A stretch of 64,000 nt of DNA from Calcarisporiella thermophila CBS 279.70 (taxonomy: Eukaryota > Fungi > Calcarisporiellomycota). The translations under genes and the position numbers were made by a program. The notes under the pieces were generated by a model. It was not told where the DNA came from and searched no databases. It was given only the letters and a program-made list of their open reading frames with translations. The DNA lies in NCBI RefSeq assembly GCF_041956535.1, contig NW_027192211.1:211079-275078 (forward strand), read 5' to 3'. Shown piece after piece: positions 50,977 to 58,784 of the stretch (position 1 is its first letter; the number at the start of each line of letters is the position of its first letter).

Positions 50977-52844
50977 ATGAAGACGACAAGTTTCCTTGCC
51001 GCGTCCACTCTCCTCGGGCTTGTTAGCCTCGATTTGAGCCAAGCGGTGCCGCTCCCGGAGTCAACGTACGTCGCTTCGCGACTTCAAGATTATCCGCATC
51101 TCGATAGGCGTATTGAGTTGGCCACTATTCCAGTGTTGGGGCCTTTCCTTGCCGCAATGTGAGTAATCGTATTAAGTGGCTGGATTTTTGCAACCCACAT
51201 TTTATATATCTAATTTTGAATCACTAATATACTAAAATTTTAATTACCAAAGGAATGGCCATACTGCAAATGAAACCGCTCCTACCGAACCAGCGCCCGC
51301 CGCCACTATTCCTGCACGCACCGCTGTACCCGGGGCTGAGAACGAGGGCAGTGAAGTGCAAGAAAAAGGAGTGAAGGCCAAGAAGCATAAAGAGCAGAGC
51401 GATGAGGATGAAGGAACCGAAGGTGATGAAGAGTACGAGAGCGCTGCAAAACATAAAAAACACAAACCTGTGGAAGAGAAAGACGAGGAAGAAGAGAGCG
51501 ATGAAGACGAGGACGAGCCTATGGTCAAACACAGACATCATAACCATGGCAAGAAAGTCAATGGTGACGATGATGAAGACATAATTGCCAAGCATAGGAA
51601 GCATAAGAAAAAGAAAGCCGGGAAATACTACGAGGACGAGGACGAGGAGAATGATGACGACCAGGTCGTAGAGAAGGCTGTTAAGCACAAGAAGCTTGAT
51701 AATGACGAAGACGATGAAGTTGAGCACTTCCACGACCATAAACATGACCATGACAAGTTACACAAGTATGGCAAAAATCATGAACACCACCACCATCATC
51801 ATCACGCGAACGACGTAGACGAGATGAACAACGAGGATGAGGATGTGGACGATGATGAACGGATGGTAACGGAAAGGAAGTCAAAAGAAGATAGGTACGA
51901 GGAGAAGCACCACAAGAAACATAGACACCACAAGGAAGACTCAGATGAGGAAGATTCAGAAGAACCTGATCCTCCAACACGGCAAGAAGCTACTCCTGAA
52001 GTGACTCAACAGCCAACACCAGTTCAACAACAAAGTGCTCCAGCGCCCAAGGGAAAGAGTCTTCTTGGCGATCTATTACCACTTCGAAAGCGATTGTTCA
52101 AGACAGCCTCCCACCATAAGCGTCAACTTCCAATCCAAGGCTTATTAAAACCACTACTTGCCAGTTCGGAAACTCCGGCTCCCGTCACTCCAACTGTTCA
52201 AGCTCCACCGGTTCAACCTCAAGAGGTCAATATCCCCGAACGGAAAGACTATGATGACGACGAGGGAGAAATGGAGGAAGAAGAGCCGGTTAGGAGGAAG
52301 AAAAAGAAGTCAGGAAAAAAGAAGCATGTGAAGCATGTTGACGATGACTTCACACCTTCGAGGTCTGCGGCCAGAAAGAGCAAAGGGAAAGCAGCAGAGA
52401 AGAGCCACGACGCAACTATGAGGGAAGCAGAGGAAGAGGAAGAGAGAAGAGACCGAGAGAGATACGAAAGGGAGAGATATGAGAGGGAAATGGAGATGGA
52501 AGAACAGGAGGAGCGAGAAAGAGAGGAAGAGATGCGATTTTCCCAACCAGTAAATATCTAGGCCCTTCAACATTTCTATTGCTTCTTTCGCGAATCATTA
52601 ATTATTCTCTATTCTATCATGATAGCCGCAATATCCCAGCGATATGGATCCAGAGGAACGCGAACGGGCGCAGGACGCCTATGAGCTTGAACGTGAGCGT
52701 TATGAAGAACGTAAAGAGCGCATGAGGGATATGGAGTCACCTAACGACACCAATGAGCCTCCAGAAAAAGGGGACGGTGAAGGTGATGGCGGGAAGAAGC
52801 CAAGTGGACCATTGGGGGCATTAAAGGGCATTCTTCCTCTCTAG
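50977..52844 (+). CDS. Secreted His/Lys/Asp/Glu-rich low-complexity protein with dibasic sites (3 exons)
   Basis: Signal peptide MKTTSFLAASTLLGLVSLDLSQA; introns ~51159-51252 and ~52549-52625 keep the frame; poly-His and acidic/basic blocks; RR/RKR/KR sites. Confidence 0.8.
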
Positions 52845-53712: not shown

Positions 53713-54636
53713 CTATTGAGTCCAGCTCTCAGCCCTCATCTGCGAAAGAAGCAAATCGTCGTAGTCTTTCTCATTGCTTATACCGGCTGCTGCTCTGATC
53801 TTAGCGCGGTCACCCGAGTCCTCCTCCTCTCCCTCCTCTTCCTCTTGCTCCTTTTTGGGGGACTTCGCCTTCTTCTTCTCACTCTTTTTCTTCCCTTGCT
53901 TCTTCATGCCTTCCTCCGCTTCCTTCTTCTTCTTCAGCATGGTCATTTCTTTCATCTTCCTCATCTCTTCATCATCTTCCTCATCCTCTTCATCTTCGTC
54001 TTTCTTGGTCACCGTTCCATCTTCGTCTTCGTCGTCTTCTTCGTCATCCAATTTGCTCAAGTTCTTCTTGTGCTTGTCCTCCTTACCCTTTTGTTTCTTC
54101 ATCTTTTTATCTTCCTTCTTAGTGACTTCCTCCTCCTCTTCCTCCGCGAAGTCTTCATCGTCCTCGTCGTCCTCGTCATCGTCCTCGTCACGCTTTTGAT
54201 GGTGCTTGGTGGATGCCTTTAGATCAGCGGCTGGTACAGGCTTGAGCTTAACGACCTTTTTGCATCCCTTCTTTGTCGCGGCCTCATCCTTAGCGTCCTG
54301 AGTCAAATAACAAATTCCATTATTGTCCATGTAGTATTTAACTGGCTCCACGGTGGAGGGAGTTGCACCAGCAGCCGAGACTGTGTTCGCCGGGACTACT
54401 TGAGGCGCATTAGGAGCAGTAGGGGGCGCGCGCCTCCAAAATTCGCTGTTCTCTCCGTGGTTAGAGTTTAGATTTTTCGCAACTCCGTTTGACACGGCGA
54501 CGGGTTGGTTTTTTGCAACATGATGTCCATGATCGAAATGGTGATAATGATGGTGGCCATCACGTTTGCTATATGGGATGGCCTGAACCATGGTGATGCC
54601 AAGTGTAGCGAGGGCAATAGCAATAACAAGCTTCAT
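53713..54636 (-). CDS. Secreted His-rich, Asp/Glu/Lys-rich protein with dibasic sites, intronless
   Basis: Signal MKLVIAIALATLGITMVQA; KR|DGHHHYHHFDHGHH; RR|; KR|DEDDDED... polyampholyte tail. Confidence 0.82.
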   Translation of the reverse strand: MKLVIAIALATLGITMVQAIPYSKRDGHHHYHHFDHGHHVAKNQPVAVSNGVAKNLNSNHGENSEFWRRAPPTAPNAPQVVPANTVSAAGATPSTVEPVKYYMDNNGICYLTQDAKDEAATKKGCKKVVKLKPVPAADLKASTKHHQKRDEDDDEDDEDDEDFAEEEEEEVTKKEDKKMKKQKGKEDKHKKNLSKLDDEEDDEDEDGTVTKKDEDEEDEEDDEEMRKMKEMTMLKKKKEAEEGMKKQGKKKSEKKKAKSPKKEQEEEEGEEEDSGDRAKIRAAAGISNEKDYDDLLLSQMRAESWTQ

Positions 54637-56552
54637 GGTGATATATAGGTTGAAGTGTCGGTGAATACGAGTGGTATTATTGGATGTCAAAATTGAAAGT
54701 GAATATGCTCTATAAGTGAGAGGGAGGGGGGTGTCGATCAAGACAAGATGAAGTGATGTTCTGTTTCTACAATTGCCTCCGGTTTTATATATTTAACTGA
54801 TTCCGAACTTTACTTTTTTCTACAACGGCGGGAATGTTGGCTATCTAACTGGTTAGGAGAAATTGAAAGGAATGATGTGCCGTATCAATTGGAAAAATAG
54901 GCAATATTTAGGCGGTTGAAGCATTATTGTGGTTAGAATACACTGACGATCACTAGTGAGAATGTGAGCATCGTTTTATTTTACTTTCCGAACAGGCCGT
55001 TTCGAAAAAATTGCTCGTGCGTGAACCTAATGATGGCACATTCATTCGCCAGACCTTTTCTATAGGGGTAATATGGAACGAAAAAATGAGCGATTAGCCC
55101 TCTACCCAACTCGCCTCTGTGGACGCTAATTTTGCTTTTCTCCTATACCCGTTCCATCTTTTACAAGATTTTCTCAAATATGAAGCTGGGGACCTATTTA
55201 AAATATGTAATTTTTATACTCCCTTTCATTGTATATCGTGAAAAAGATTAATAGAGTAGATAAAAACATTCGATGTCTGACGCATTCCAATGGAGGCTAA
55301 CTCTTAAGAAAAGTGGGGGATTTGTCTCAGCCTATAGTCCATGACCATATATTAGAGATGGCCCAGGGATCTCCCAAGTACATACTGCACGTGTGCATCC
55401 TTAAGTGTTCCCTTAAATTCTTTGAAGTGGTGTCATAATATTGCGTGATGAGAGAAAAAAAAAGGGAAAGGATTAGTCAAAAAGCGTGCTAACCGGTTGC
55501 TTTTCGCAAGGTTCAATTTTTCCGAGTTCATTTCAATCATTCTTCCAACCTGCTAAAATATCATATTATATAGCAATGGCTCTCTTTATCTCTTATTATT
55601 ATTCAATCAGATTTCTCAAGTAGTTATCAAAATCTAACATAGTCAGTTTCGCTAAAAGAAAAAGCCTCATGCTACTATAGCTTAAATAGCTTGCTTTGAG
55701 TTGGAATTAAACTAATGATTCGACTTGCAAGTTCTTATAACTCGTAAGCGAAATGTAAGTTTCAATTTTTTGGTTCTCCAAAATACTTTTTTAATCTTGA
55801 ATTCTGCTTAATATACCAATAGGCATTAAACGGATTTTATTAAATAACTTTAAAGCAATCGAAGAAGCTAGTTTCCCATTTCTCTGGTCACTCTAAAATC
55901 TTTTTGAACATGGAGGGGTGACAACGTCAATAAAATTTTGAAAATTTTATCTGAAAATAGCTAGGAATGGATTCTAATGCAATTCTCCAAAACTTGCATT
56001 ATAACTATTTAAGGAAAAAATTGAAGGTTTTAGAAATCAATAAAAAAAAGTCCGATCTTGAACATCTTTCTCTCATATAAAGCTGATTTTTAATGAACTT
56101 TCTGAAAGGATAAGGCTTTTTGCAAATTTTATCGAATTGACAATAAGTGATATTCAATGGCCTTTTTCGAGTAAATTTTACCGACTTTTTTTAATTAATA
56201 TCTCTTTTCAGACTTTTGAAAGCTGATCATACTGCATATATCTACATCGGTATAGGATAGGAAGCAATTGAGCGACCATGGTCTCAGTGTTTTATGAACA
56301 GTCATCAATACAGACATTGTGCTTAGGATGCTTTGAACGATCCCGTTGTTTTATTAGGCTGTGACTATGTTGTAGTTATTTTCACCATATTATTCTTCCT
56401 AAATAAATATTTTTGAAACATTAAAGAGAAACATATATAAACCGTAGTTGTTCTCTATATCATAGTAGTGCATTTTGTAAAAAAAGTATACCTTGGAATC
56501 TTTAGTTTTTAAAAAGTAATCGTTCTTTATAACCACATCCTACGAGCAAGTA

Positions 56553-57092
56553 ATGAAAGGGATTAATCTTGTTGCACTCATTTTTGCTGCCGTAACCTTT
56601 TCTGGCGCTGCTCCACTTAGTAAACGTCACGGAGGAGATAATATCTATAATGATGCACACGTGCTCGGAGACAATGACATAGGCAATACCAATATCAACT
56701 CTGACACTGTTTATGTGTCCAATAACAATATAAACACTCGGGCAGATGGAAAGGGGAACAATTCGGCATGGAAGCGGGCTCCATGGGGTGGCGACAATTT
56801 TTATGATGACGTGCATGTAGCAGGCTCAGGCTATATCGCGAATACCAAAATCAATTCGGATACGATATATGTCGTGAATGGCAACGTAGATACATCTGCT
56901 AAGGGCTGTAATAATAATTCAGCTCATGGGAAACGCCATAACTGTAGGCGTGACGATATTATCAGCGACGCAGGCATTCTGGATACGAATGCACTATTCC
57001 ATACGAATATTAACTCGGACACAGTGGTGGTTGACCAAGATAACACGAACACCAGTGCCAATGGTAACGACAACAATTCAGCTTCAGCCTGA
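56553..57092 (+). CDS. Secreted Kex2-processed repeat precursor A (3 Asn-rich modules)
   Basis: Signal peptide + SKR; three ~46-51 aa repeats sharing INSDT and NNSA, separated by KR and KR-HNC-RR. Confidence 0.88.
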   Translation: MKGINLVALIFAAVTFSGAAPLSKRHGGDNIYNDAHVLGDNDIGNTNINSDTVYVSNNNINTRADGKGNNSAWKRAPWGGDNFYDDVHVAGSGYIANTKINSDTIYVVNGNVDTSAKGCNNNSAHGKRHNCRRDDIISDAGILDTNALFHTNINSDTVVVDQDNTNTSANGNDNNSASA

Positions 57093-57848
57093 TGTTAGGG
57101 CGACTATTTCAAATTCCCCTCGCACTATATATACTCAACCCAAGCATTCGCATAGCGGGGCAACCCACCCTTGATAGCCATACAGTTCACCTGACATCCT
57201 CTAGTATTTAGTTGCATTTTCACCTTTATATCCCCCGTAATAAATACTGGTTTTAAACTGTTATCTCTCGTTCGCTTTCAGAACCCCACAAAATAAGCGA
57301 GTTGAGCCTTTAAGAAAAGTTTCCTAAAAAGAAGCGTGGCACTAGTCCAAACAGAAAATGGCTGCCAATGCAAAAAAATTTATTGCCAATTTGGGCACTG
57401 ATCACATATCTCTGCCTAACCGAGCTTCCCCAAAGATGGCTGTCATTTTCTTTCGGCGCGCAGAGGCGTGCCTGGATATTCAGAGAGGCATTGGGGGTGG
57501 TTGGTACTATGCAAAAGTGCAAGTGGTTCGCAACGATCCAAGAAAAGACTGATTTCTAACGCTAGGAATGGACTGGTGAAAACTTTGGTAACCGAAATCG
57601 GCCCAACCCCTCCCACCCAAGCAGAGGTTGGAGGAAATTATCCGAAAATAGTCTCGAAGAATGTTCACTGGAAATATTTAAATAAACATTCTTCCTTTTT
57701 CATACGACAATTCTCAGGTCGTCTTTTGATTTAGACACGGCCGGCATCCCCCTTCTTCATCCCCTTTCCTTCCGTCTCTCTTTCCTTTTAACCAGGCAAG
57801 AAGAAACGTTTCCCTCTGTTTCTGCTTCCCGTCGCAAACAAAAATTCT

Positions 57849-58784
57849 ATGAAGTCACCCATCCTTACCACACTTACTATTGTCGGAATAGCGGTGTTGT
57901 CGCAGGGTGCACCTCACAACAGGCGTGGTATCCTGGATAACACTCTGAACAACCCCGATATCATTGACCACCTTTCTCTCATTGATTCCACCGTTAACTC
58001 AAACCCGCAGACATCGGAAAATCGAAACTCCAACACAAAAGCAAATGGTCCTGGCGACAATTCGGACCTGTCAAAGCAAGGAGGAGAGGGCATTTACCAC
58101 AAAGGCCACTACAAGATGCGCCGTGGCCTCATAGACAACTCGCTCAATAATGTACATATCCTCGACCACCTAGACATGTTCAACACTATAATGAATTCTG
58201 ACGTGGAGAAGGACGAAAATACAAATGCAAACACAAAAGCATCCGGCCCTGGTGACAATTCAGCATATTCACGAAAAGGTCCCGAAGGCTACTACTATCG
58301 GGGAGGAGGAGCGGACGTTTATAACCCACCGATACGATATGTCGCCCCCGCTCAATACCAGCAAATGAATGCGGTTCCCGTGCAAATGATCCCCATTGGA
58401 ATGGCCCCTGTCCAAATGGTTCCAGCAAGGATGACCCCTATCCAAATGGTCCCAGCCCGAATGTCGCCTACAGCCATGGATACAGTTGAAATGGATAGTG
58501 ATAGAGGCAGATATGATCCAGACGCCATCAACAACTCAATGGAACCGCCCAACCAAGATTTGACCGATGTATTAGGGAAGAAAAAGCGTGGCCTCCTCGA
58601 CAACACTCTCAACAATGCTGATATCATTGATCATCTTTCACTCATTGATTCGATGGTAAACTCGAACCCACAGGATTCGGAGAATCGAAATGCAAACACT
58701 AAGGCATCAGGACCAGGCGATAACTCCAGTCTCTCAAAGCAAGGACCGGAGGGCGCCTATATTAAAAAGGGAACGGGGCACTGA
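57849..58784 (+). CDS. Secreted Kex2-processed repeat precursor B (3 Asn-rich modules + Met/Pro spacer)
   Basis: Signal peptide + NRR; three repeats G(I/L)(L/I)DN(T/S)LNN...DHL...NS...NTKA(N/S)GPGDNS, each preceded by RR or KR. Confidence 0.88.
   Translation: MKSPILTTLTIVGIAVLSQGAPHNRRGILDNTLNNPDIIDHLSLIDSTVNSNPQTSENRNSNTKANGPGDNSDLSKQGGEGIYHKGHYKMRRGLIDNSLNNVHILDHLDMFNTIMNSDVEKDENTNANTKASGPGDNSAYSRKGPEGYYYRGGGADVYNPPIRYVAPAQYQQMNAVPVQMIPIGMAPVQMVPARMTPIQMVPARMSPTAMDTVEMDSDRGRYDPDAINNSMEPPNQDLTDVLGKKKRGLLDNTLNNADIIDHLSLIDSMVNSNPQDSENRNANTKASGPGDNSSLSKQGPEGAYIKKGTGH
58378..58468 (+). repeat. ~30-bp tandem repeat encoding PVQMV-PARMT type pentapeptides
   Basis: gtccaaatggttccagcaaggatgacccct / atccaaatggtcccagcccgaatgtcgcct. 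Confidence 0.75.

Follow-up and report, generated by a model that had tools for sequence, protein, structure and literature searches.

What do two neighbouring genes of the fungus Calcarisporiella thermophila CBS 279.70 make, if each encodes a signal-type N-terminus and three repeats set behind pairs of basic residues? The two open reading frames (ORFs), A and B, lie in a 64 000-nucleotide stretch of contig NW_027192211.1 (the window, whose coordinates are used below). A preliminary description read them as the two subunits, possibly a nucleator and a major component, of a Kex2-processed fibrillar coat of spores or aerial hyphae. We find instead that A and B are two of about 20 family genes (at least 18–21 ORFs) carrying about 90 modules in this genome. 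In our judgement the modules probably represent exported peptides of ~50 residues, acidic and rich in Asn, that form a new and as yet unnamed family. The family crosses kingdoms and in C. thermophila has been amplified in the form of polyproteins of the Kex2-processed repeat protein (KEP) type.

Read from the DNA, ORF A and ORF B are both uninterrupted on the + strand, each with an ATG and a stop codon. Their N-termini are hydrophobic (best 12-residue Kyte–Doolittle window 2.5 in A and 2.4 in B), and the hydrophobic stretch is followed in both by small residues and an AP..KR or AP..RR sequence. The canonical KR/RR sites of the two precursors are all located at module borders, each just 5′ of a repeat. 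A and B are homologous (composition-adjusted BLASTP, E = 8e-10); an ungapped comparison of the first module of A with the second module of B gives 21 identities in 44 positions, a count that none of 200 000 shuffles reached (maximum 16). The preliminary description was thus accurate in calling these two secreted-type genes with three repeats each behind KR/RR, in its identity count and in treating A and B as diverged paralogues, a relationship that the family hidden Markov model (HMM) also supports. It was likewise right that the eight-Cys hydrophobin pattern is absent, as A contains two Cys residues and B none. A Pfam scan of A and B (E ≤ 10) returned no family match, and neither has a GPI-type C-terminus. 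The features of the two genes are as follows.

56553..57092, + strand: ORF A, a 179-residue precursor consisting of a signal peptide, three A-type (divergent) modules and a stop; the public protein P0001 is identical
56553..56609, + strand: predicted signal peptide of A, residues 1–19, predicted cut after SGA (hydrophobic window LVALIFAAVTFS, Kyte–Doolittle 2.5, heuristic)
56622..56627, + strand: A dibasic site 1, Lys24-Arg25 (dibasic-site scan)
56634..56765, + strand: A module 1, core Gly28–Ser71, predicted released peptide His26–Trp73 (family HMM, 34.5 bits)
56772..56777, + strand: A dibasic site 2, Lys74-Arg75 (dibasic-site scan)
56790..56921, + strand: A module 2, core Gly80–Ser123, with Cys119 (HMM, 19.6 bits; alignment)
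56931..56951, + strand: A double dibasic spacer KR-HNC-RR, residues 127–133, with the second Cys, Cys131 (an arrangement that recurs in paralogues)
56952..57089, + strand: A module 3, Asp134–Ala179, the most divergent, net charge −8 (HMM, 21.2 bits)
57849..58784, + strand: ORF B, a 311-residue precursor consisting of a signal peptide, modules B1 and B2, a long Met/Pro-rich spacer and module B3 (sequence, HMM)
57849..57908, + strand: predicted signal peptide of B, residues 1–20 (hydrophobicity heuristic)
57921..57926, + strand: B dibasic site 1, Arg25-Arg26 (dibasic-site scan)
57927..58118, + strand: B1, 46-residue core (57927–58064) plus conserved tail, a predicted 64-residue peptide (HMM, 82.7 bits)
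58119..58124, + strand: B dibasic site 2, Arg91-Arg92 (dibasic-site scan)
58125..58262, + strand: B2 core, a variant of its own that recurs as second module in the C2 and C12 paralogues (HMM, 76.7 bits; clade support below)
58263..58577, + strand: B2 tail and Met/Pro-rich spacer or pro-region, residues 139–243 (read from the sequence)
58578..58589, + strand: B dibasic site 3, KKKR, residues 244–247 (dibasic-site scan)
58590..58781, + strand: B3, 46-residue core (58590–58727) plus conserved tail, a predicted 64-residue C-terminal peptide (HMM, 87.4 bits)

The Cys residues of ORF A (window 56907–56951, residues 119–133) follow a rule that also applies in L030, L021, L022 and L031. A module with Cys at core position 42/43 is followed by a short extra spacer, KR-x2–3-C-RR, which brings one more Cys and a second dibasic site, while modules without this Cys are followed by a single KR only; in ORF A the pair is Cys119 and KR-HNC-RR. 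This covariation suggests a disulfide that would hold on to a peptide of three or four residues across the first site of cleavage. The Met/Pro-rich spacer of ORF B is repetitive (window 58290–58590, residues ~148–247). Two paralogues of like layout, L035 (C2) and L037 (C12), have long spacers at the same position, which are not homologous to that of B.

When ORF B was used as a query, eight proteins were returned, all of them C. thermophila paralogues annotated as uncharacterized; one agrees letter for letter with an ORF of the assembly. ORF A as the sole query matched only itself, and its kinship was revealed by the family HMM together with a mixed precursor, L021. Searched in all six frames, the 28-Mb genome contains 64 matches to the module, spread over at least 15 loci on ten contigs. 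The HMM census, for which the module model was seeded by a regular expression, found 100 module matches, 83 of them full length, in 21 ORF pieces with 1–12 modules each (pieces, since a few genes are interrupted by masked stretches). All paralogues begin with the same signal-type N-terminus as judged by the heuristic. A-type modules are not confined to ORF A: in L021, a seven-module precursor on contig 9 (C9), they sit between ordinary modules. Those of L021 are 80% identical to A module 1 and, with the modules of ORF A, form a five-row clade with 99% support in the Shimodaira–Hasegawa-like approximate likelihood-ratio test (SH-aLRT). The three modules of B fall in a subgroup found only in the fungus and marked by an additional conserved tail; B3 is 91% identical to a module on C8, and the B2 variant forms a three-row clade (96% SH-aLRT) with the second modules of the C2 and C12 paralogues of like layout. 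A and B are one tandem pair of the two most derived subtypes of the family. With about 20 genes, about 90 modules and A-type modules mixed with other types in one precursor, the pairing of a nucleator with a major subunit is not supported, and a self-contained two-component system does not describe them.

Among module pairs of at least 60% identity, the median ratio of nonsynonymous to synonymous substitution rates (dN/dS) is 0.126, and 199 of 199 pairs lie below 0.5, with synonymous sites often saturated. By these measures the copies are old and under purifying selection on the peptide sequence. The spacers between modules vary freely in length (1–185 residues, median 15). Runs of at least three His residues occur in 19 of 85 spacers or tails and in 11 of 21 ORFs (e.g. 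L024, L025, L031 and L034–L036) and are absent from A and B; in L024, which has 11 modules, the end of the core is replaced by His runs throughout the gene. Four paralogues, L033 (C8), L035 (C2), L036 (C20) and L037 (C12), carry before a module a conserved, helical-looking segment of ~25 residues with the core A-R-M-R-M-V and the ending T-I-G-K-R. The segment, absent from A and B, is a candidate pro-region or sorting element. Pfam matches of the paralogue P0003 (TetR_C_21 and others) were below cut-off with no qualifying stretch and were rejected as repeat-inflated noise.

The conserved unit is a core of 46 residues, the first of which, in B, is the Gly directly after KR/RR in the alignment. 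The 44-residue module of the preliminary description was the right homologous unit, but the true core begins three residues upstream of its 'DN'. It consists of Gly, two aliphatic residues and Asp, a hydrophobic-patterned first half and an Asn-rich second half, in which invariant Asn residues alternate around N-A-N-T-[KR]-A; an invariant Gly comes next, and [DN]-N-[SA] closes the core. More than 90% of the modules agree at positions G1, D4, N24, S25, N32, N34, N36 and G41. B-type modules add a conserved tail of ~17 residues, and in the divergent A-type modules 0–5 further residues separate the core from the dibasic site. The β-type alternation that had been proposed for the whole module is found only in its C-terminal half, where the periodicity of positions 24–46 is best at 180° and Asn alternates with small residues. 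The N-terminal half (positions 1–24) has a helix-like hydrophobic periodicity of ~110° per residue (~3.3 residues). In composition the peptides have ~20% Asn+Gln, 17–20% charged and 22% hydrophobic residues.

An AlphaFold2 model of one B-type peptide, built on a 98-row alignment, has a predicted local distance difference test score (pLDDT) of 55, with a helix at residues 2–23 and coil thereafter. For the mature part of A (27 three-module rows) the pLDDT is 33 with nothing above 50, although a strand pair appears at the matching place in each module of this low-confidence model. Models from the ESM Atlas are no better. Models of such confidence speak neither for nor against a β-solenoid or amyloid, and a complex prediction with four copies of B3 (score 0.01) likewise counts neither for nor against self-assembly.

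To look for relatives elsewhere, 1.84 billion representative proteins were searched with a profile built from 64 modules. The 57 matches include, besides the paralogues, ~40 short single-module proteins of 46–170 residues. The bacterial sources are many Streptomyces species, Phytomonospora, Kribbella, Actinokineospora, Streptodolium and metagenomic contigs, the last of which carry no taxonomy; the fungal sources besides C. thermophila are Orbilia oligospora, Dactylella cylindrospora and Crucibulum laeve. All homologues outside C. thermophila are annotated as hypothetical. The HMM search proposed in the preliminary description, run here with a wider module set, matched no characterised domain and found homologues in bacteria, fungi and plant assemblies. 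The earlier statement that the module belongs to no named family also stands: Pfam and NCBIfam contain no match, a PDB profile search gave none at E ≤ 10, a literature search with family motifs gave nothing relevant and no C. thermophila paper mentions the family. The plant copies are single-module homologues annotated in two assemblies, P0035 of Stipagrostis hirtigluma on a chromosome-scale 8.1-Mb contig and P0051 of Papaver nudicaule on a 9.5-kb contig.

The similarity between kingdoms can be high. P0071 of Streptomyces sp. NBC_00775 is identical to the last module of a 12-module fungal precursor at 45 of 51 positions (88%), end to end, and the metagenomic P0019 shares 79% identity with a module from a different gene of the fungus. 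These homologues arrive at the core in different ways. In the forms from actinomycetes the core Gly follows directly on a Sec signal peptide whose last residues are A-H-A or similar (AHA|G), three metagenomic forms (P0019, P0020 and P0022) have a classical double-glycine leader with G-G directly before the core, and in the Orbilia form a signal peptide and pro-region are followed by K-K-R before the core. Seven of the ~40 non-fungal matches are leaderless, with Met placed directly on the core. At the other end, the bacterial proteins stop 2–5 residues after the core, which is the site of the next KR in compact fungal precursors. Since three unrelated processing systems give the same peptide ends, there is strong indirect evidence that the fungal KR-to-KR unit would be freed as a peptide of ~50 residues.

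The placement of the dibasic sites in the fungal genes points in the same direction. KR/RR directly precedes 76 of the 83 full cores and lies within eight residues of 80; inside the 83 cores no KR/RR is observed, compared with ~3.5 expected from composition. The complete ORFs contain 115 KR/RR sites, of which 65 stand directly before a module. The genome contains at least six kexin-type P domains (six P_proprotein matches above cut-off) and many S10 carboxypeptidase genes. Six kexin-type domains are more convertase genes than expected in a fungus, and the many convertase genes may be tied to the many dibasic-site precursors. The six matches include two divergently oriented pairs, C5:1110032-1112179 and C7:757755-759762. 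Taken with the bacterial single peptides of the same ends, the placement of modules behind KR/RR bears out the Kex2-processed repeat-precursor architecture of the preliminary description. A predicted released peptide of ~50–65 residues is well supported, and we regard it as quite likely that the precursors are actually cleaved and secreted.

In the proposed mechanism, the precursor would enter the secretory pathway via its signal peptide, a kexin-type convertase would cut after each KR/RR and a Kex1-type carboxypeptidase would trim the basic residues, so that free acidic, Asn/Asp-rich peptides built on the 46-residue core would be secreted. The predicted products of A are peptides of ~48, 51 and 46 residues and a tripeptide, which is perhaps still disulfide-linked; those of B are two 64-residue peptides and one long product with the Met/Pro spacer. 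The core peptide would be the same molecule that bacteria make from single-copy genes. Because it is identical in kind to the bacterial single-copy product, the functional unit would be an extracellular peptide of ~50 residues, and amplification as polyproteins would multiply its dose and diversity in the fungus. As the most likely role we tentatively propose an extracellular bioactive peptide in interaction or competition with microbes. Its action is possibly metal- or pH-dependent, given the acidic core and the frequent His-rich tails.

The gene context in bacteria was considered for both the double-glycine and the actinomycete forms. P0019 is flanked by a gene for an HlyD-type secretion protein of the NHLP bacteriocin system (NHLM_micro_HlyD, TIGR03794, 224 bits with a cut-off of 156) and a C39-peptidase/ABC exporter (NHLM_micro_ABC1, TIGR03796, split into two ORFs scoring 670 and 439 bits). 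The two correspond to the export cassette known for bacteriocin-type peptides of cyanobacteria and other bacteria (Haft, 2010, PMC2887384; Wang, 2011, PMC3140520). P0020 and P0022 have the leader and no adjacent exporter, and both lie in another conserved neighbourhood. The peptide gene is single-copy, rare in Streptomyces (seven of 401 species genomes searched) and sometimes plasmid-borne; it behaves as a mobile accessory gene. The actinomycete locus set comprises at least ten genomes, a lower bound, as it was found by one eight-residue pattern. Two loci on metagenome contigs have further particulars. The leaderless P0016 (L058/L059, 6001–6165) starts four bases after an ArsR/HTH_20 regulator gene, which leaves no room for a leader. 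In P0058 (L053, 8001–8468) the module is fused to an extra C-terminal domain of ~85 residues; just upstream of it are PatG_D/PatG_C and Peptidase_S8 genes, downstream of it is one that encodes an HsbA (hydrophobic surface binding) domain, and the contig also contains integrase and IS21 genes.

The family occurs in several genera of mycelial actinomycetes and in other bacteria, in four fungi that belong to three phyla, and in two plants, and cross-kingdom transfer would be the simplest reading of this pattern. A bacterial origin is favoured by the greater variety of export systems and taxa in bacteria, and transfer between bacteria and fungi in the direction from bacteria to fungus has, in our estimation, an even chance of being correct. 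The fuller scenario, in which the gene of an exported bacterial peptide crossed between soil bacteria and fungi and was rebuilt by C. thermophila as Kex2 polyproteins, amplified ~ninety-fold, is offered with some reserve.

Several observations weigh against this account as a whole or in part. The maximum-likelihood tree of 98 modules over 46 columns is largely unresolved, with fungal and bacterial sequences interleaved; its supported branches do not force more than one origin, and the short alignment (46–50 columns) limits any phylogeny. Monophyly of the C. thermophila modules is not rejected by the approximately unbiased test (p = 0.16), which bears on the number and direction of transfers. 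As regards processing, the signal peptides of the family were called by a hydrophobicity heuristic, two of the three cores of ORF A lie 2–5 residues downstream of KR, and B2 would leave the precursor with a spacer of ~100 residues unless cut further. As regards the proposed role, an exporter adjoins only one of the three double-glycine loci examined, and the ten actinomycete loci have the peptide gene alone in common, with no conserved immunity or modification neighbour. The peptides are acidic (the median net charge is −2.5 for those of the fungus and −4 for the others, 97% of which are negative), and most membrane-active bacteriocins are not anionic.

Comparison with known systems places the fungal genes closest to the KEPs. 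As in that class, they have a signal peptide, near-identical units between KR/RR and multigene sets within one genome; A and B each contain three units (at least three being typical of the class), the secretion signal is present by the heuristic and kexin is encoded in the genome. They differ from KEPs in the length of the C. thermophila unit (46–65 residues), in the unusual size of the family with its about 90 modules and in that the core peptide has clear bacterial homologues made without a Kex2 system. We know of no described KEP with bacterial homologues of its core peptide. KEPs as a class are documented in fungi including Mucoromycota, to which C. thermophila is assigned and where they tend towards longer peptides (Le Marquer, 2019, PMC6339444; Umemura, 2020, PMC7329392), and Calcarisporiella is absent from both surveys. 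The yeast α-factor precursor also consists of tandem copies of one peptide, with Kex2/Kex1-type release of the kind predicted here, but α-factor has 13 residues, Ste13 spacer dipeptides and one or two genes, compared with ~50-residue units and about 20 genes in the present family. Dikaritin-type KEPs, the ustiloxin-like peptides that are made on ribosomes and modified after translation (RiPPs), have cores far shorter than 46 residues; a genome search with PF11807 (UstYa/DUF3328) gave no match, the controls of the same search being silent too. Double-glycine bacteriocin-type precursors are resembled by P0019, P0020 and P0022 in their typical leader and by P0019 in its neighbouring exporter. The window genes, by contrast, use eukaryotic signal peptides and dibasic sites, and the core matches no known bacteriocin family, is anionic and has no modification enzymes in view.

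The possibility that most closely follows the preliminary description, a functional amyloid or surface coat in which the peptides would self-assemble through their Asn ladders on aerial hyphae or spores in the manner of Rep1 or the chaplins, is in our view unlikely. Processing of Rep1 of Ustilago maydis yields 11 peptides, which build up amyloid fibrils on the aerial hyphae (PMC3133707), and the architecture of Rep1, one pre-pro-protein laid out for many peptides of similar size, makes it probably the closest analogue of the C. thermophila precursors. The likeness does not extend to composition: the repellents are amphipathic and form surface amyloid, whereas the C. thermophila peptides are acidic and hydrophilic. 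No protein of a smut fungus was among the matches to the module profile in 1.84 billion proteins, no Rep1 sequence having been compared directly. A coat would also suit the alternation of invariant Asn with small residues at 180° in the C-terminal half of the core, the mycelial habit of all named holders (filamentous actinomycetes and filamentous fungi) and the recurring strand pair of the low-confidence ORF A model, set against a single-module model of helix and coil and the low pLDDT of both predictions. Chaplins and rodlins share with the family that they are small secreted peptides of mycelial actinomycetes, and curli CsgA repeats a superficial likeness of Gly/Asn motifs. Chaplin kinship, raised by the UniRef name 'DUF320' on a Kribbella member, was rejected, as a Pfam search of 98 modules (E ≤ 1) gave no match to chaplin (PF03777), rodlin, curlin (PF07012), HET-s or hydrophobin families, and hhalign of the module profile with a chaplin profile (14 domains from two carrier Streptomyces genomes) gave a probability of 0.1%. 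The modules, moreover, lack the Cys pair and hydrophobic character of chaplins. In the Protein Atlas the nearest clusters to a Streptomyces member are rodlin (0.81) and chaplin (0.79), which is chance level by the tool's own calibration, and nothing was returned for ORF A. Leaderless forms and forms with a bacteriocin exporter fit a coat poorly.

The peptides could instead be diffusible signals, quorum or developmental ones in bacteria and autocrine or inter-hyphal ones in the fungus, with the polyprotein raising the dose as in the α-factor precursor. Signalling peptides with double-glycine leaders are likewise exported by C39 ABC transporters, 88% identity between kingdoms would suit a ligand read by a receptor, one of the leaderless genes is coupled in translation to that of an ArsR-type regulator and the KEPs include the α-factor pheromone (PMC6339444). 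We doubt this explanation about as much as the coat, since about 90 diversified modules in about 20 genes exceed the need of a signal, the ten actinomycete loci have no conserved receptor or two-component genes beside the peptide gene, and a rare accessory gene of Streptomyces is unlike a core developmental signal. It is less likely still that, instead of acting on cells, the peptides bind metals (Zn, Cu or Ni by chelation, or Ca) or crystals. The acidic core with its invariant Asp and Asn positions, the His runs and the Cys pairs of some subtypes would fit such a role, but the His runs lie in variable tails rather than in the core and are absent from A, B and most bacterial homologues, and no known metal-binding motif or family was matched. 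That the precursors remain intact as repetitive hydrophilic secreted or wall proteins, the dibasic residues being merely part of the repeat, seems to us very improbable. The disorder-like character of both AlphaFold models recalls many wall or hydrophilin-type proteins; the exact coincidence of the ends of the bacterial free peptides with the fungal KR-to-KR unit, the exclusion of KR/RR from the cores together with its presence at module starts, and the lack of a GPI-type C-terminus in A and B all speak against this reading.

Two other ORFs of the window, 53713–54741 (− strand) and 51356–52561 (+ strand), encode proteins of high charge in which His runs and dibasic sites occur, the former also with a signal-type hydrophobic stretch. 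They were considered as family members and set aside, as neither the module HMM nor the search of the genome with its own sequences gave a match.

KEPs are widespread in fungi, and to our knowledge almost none has a known function or origin. Here the mature product can be defined from the sequence, because the bacterial single-copy homologues mark both ends of the peptide. Kept at as much as 88% identity between a Streptomyces and a fungus of an early-diverging lineage, it is a short, synthesisable and testable molecule, for which genetically tractable Streptomyces hosts are available to find its function. Once the family is defined, about a hundred proteins of bacteria, fungi and plants now called 'hypothetical' would gain an annotation. 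The peptide is also a clear case in which to ask where the cores of KEPs originate. If the account given above is true, one mature peptide is delivered by at least four routes (a Sec signal, a double-glycine leader and C39 exporter, no leader at all, and in fungi a signal peptide with dibasic sites), and the family would be a natural experiment in the domestication of a peptide that is bioactive or assembles by itself. Among KEP families it would then be the first whose bacterial counterpart can be traced.

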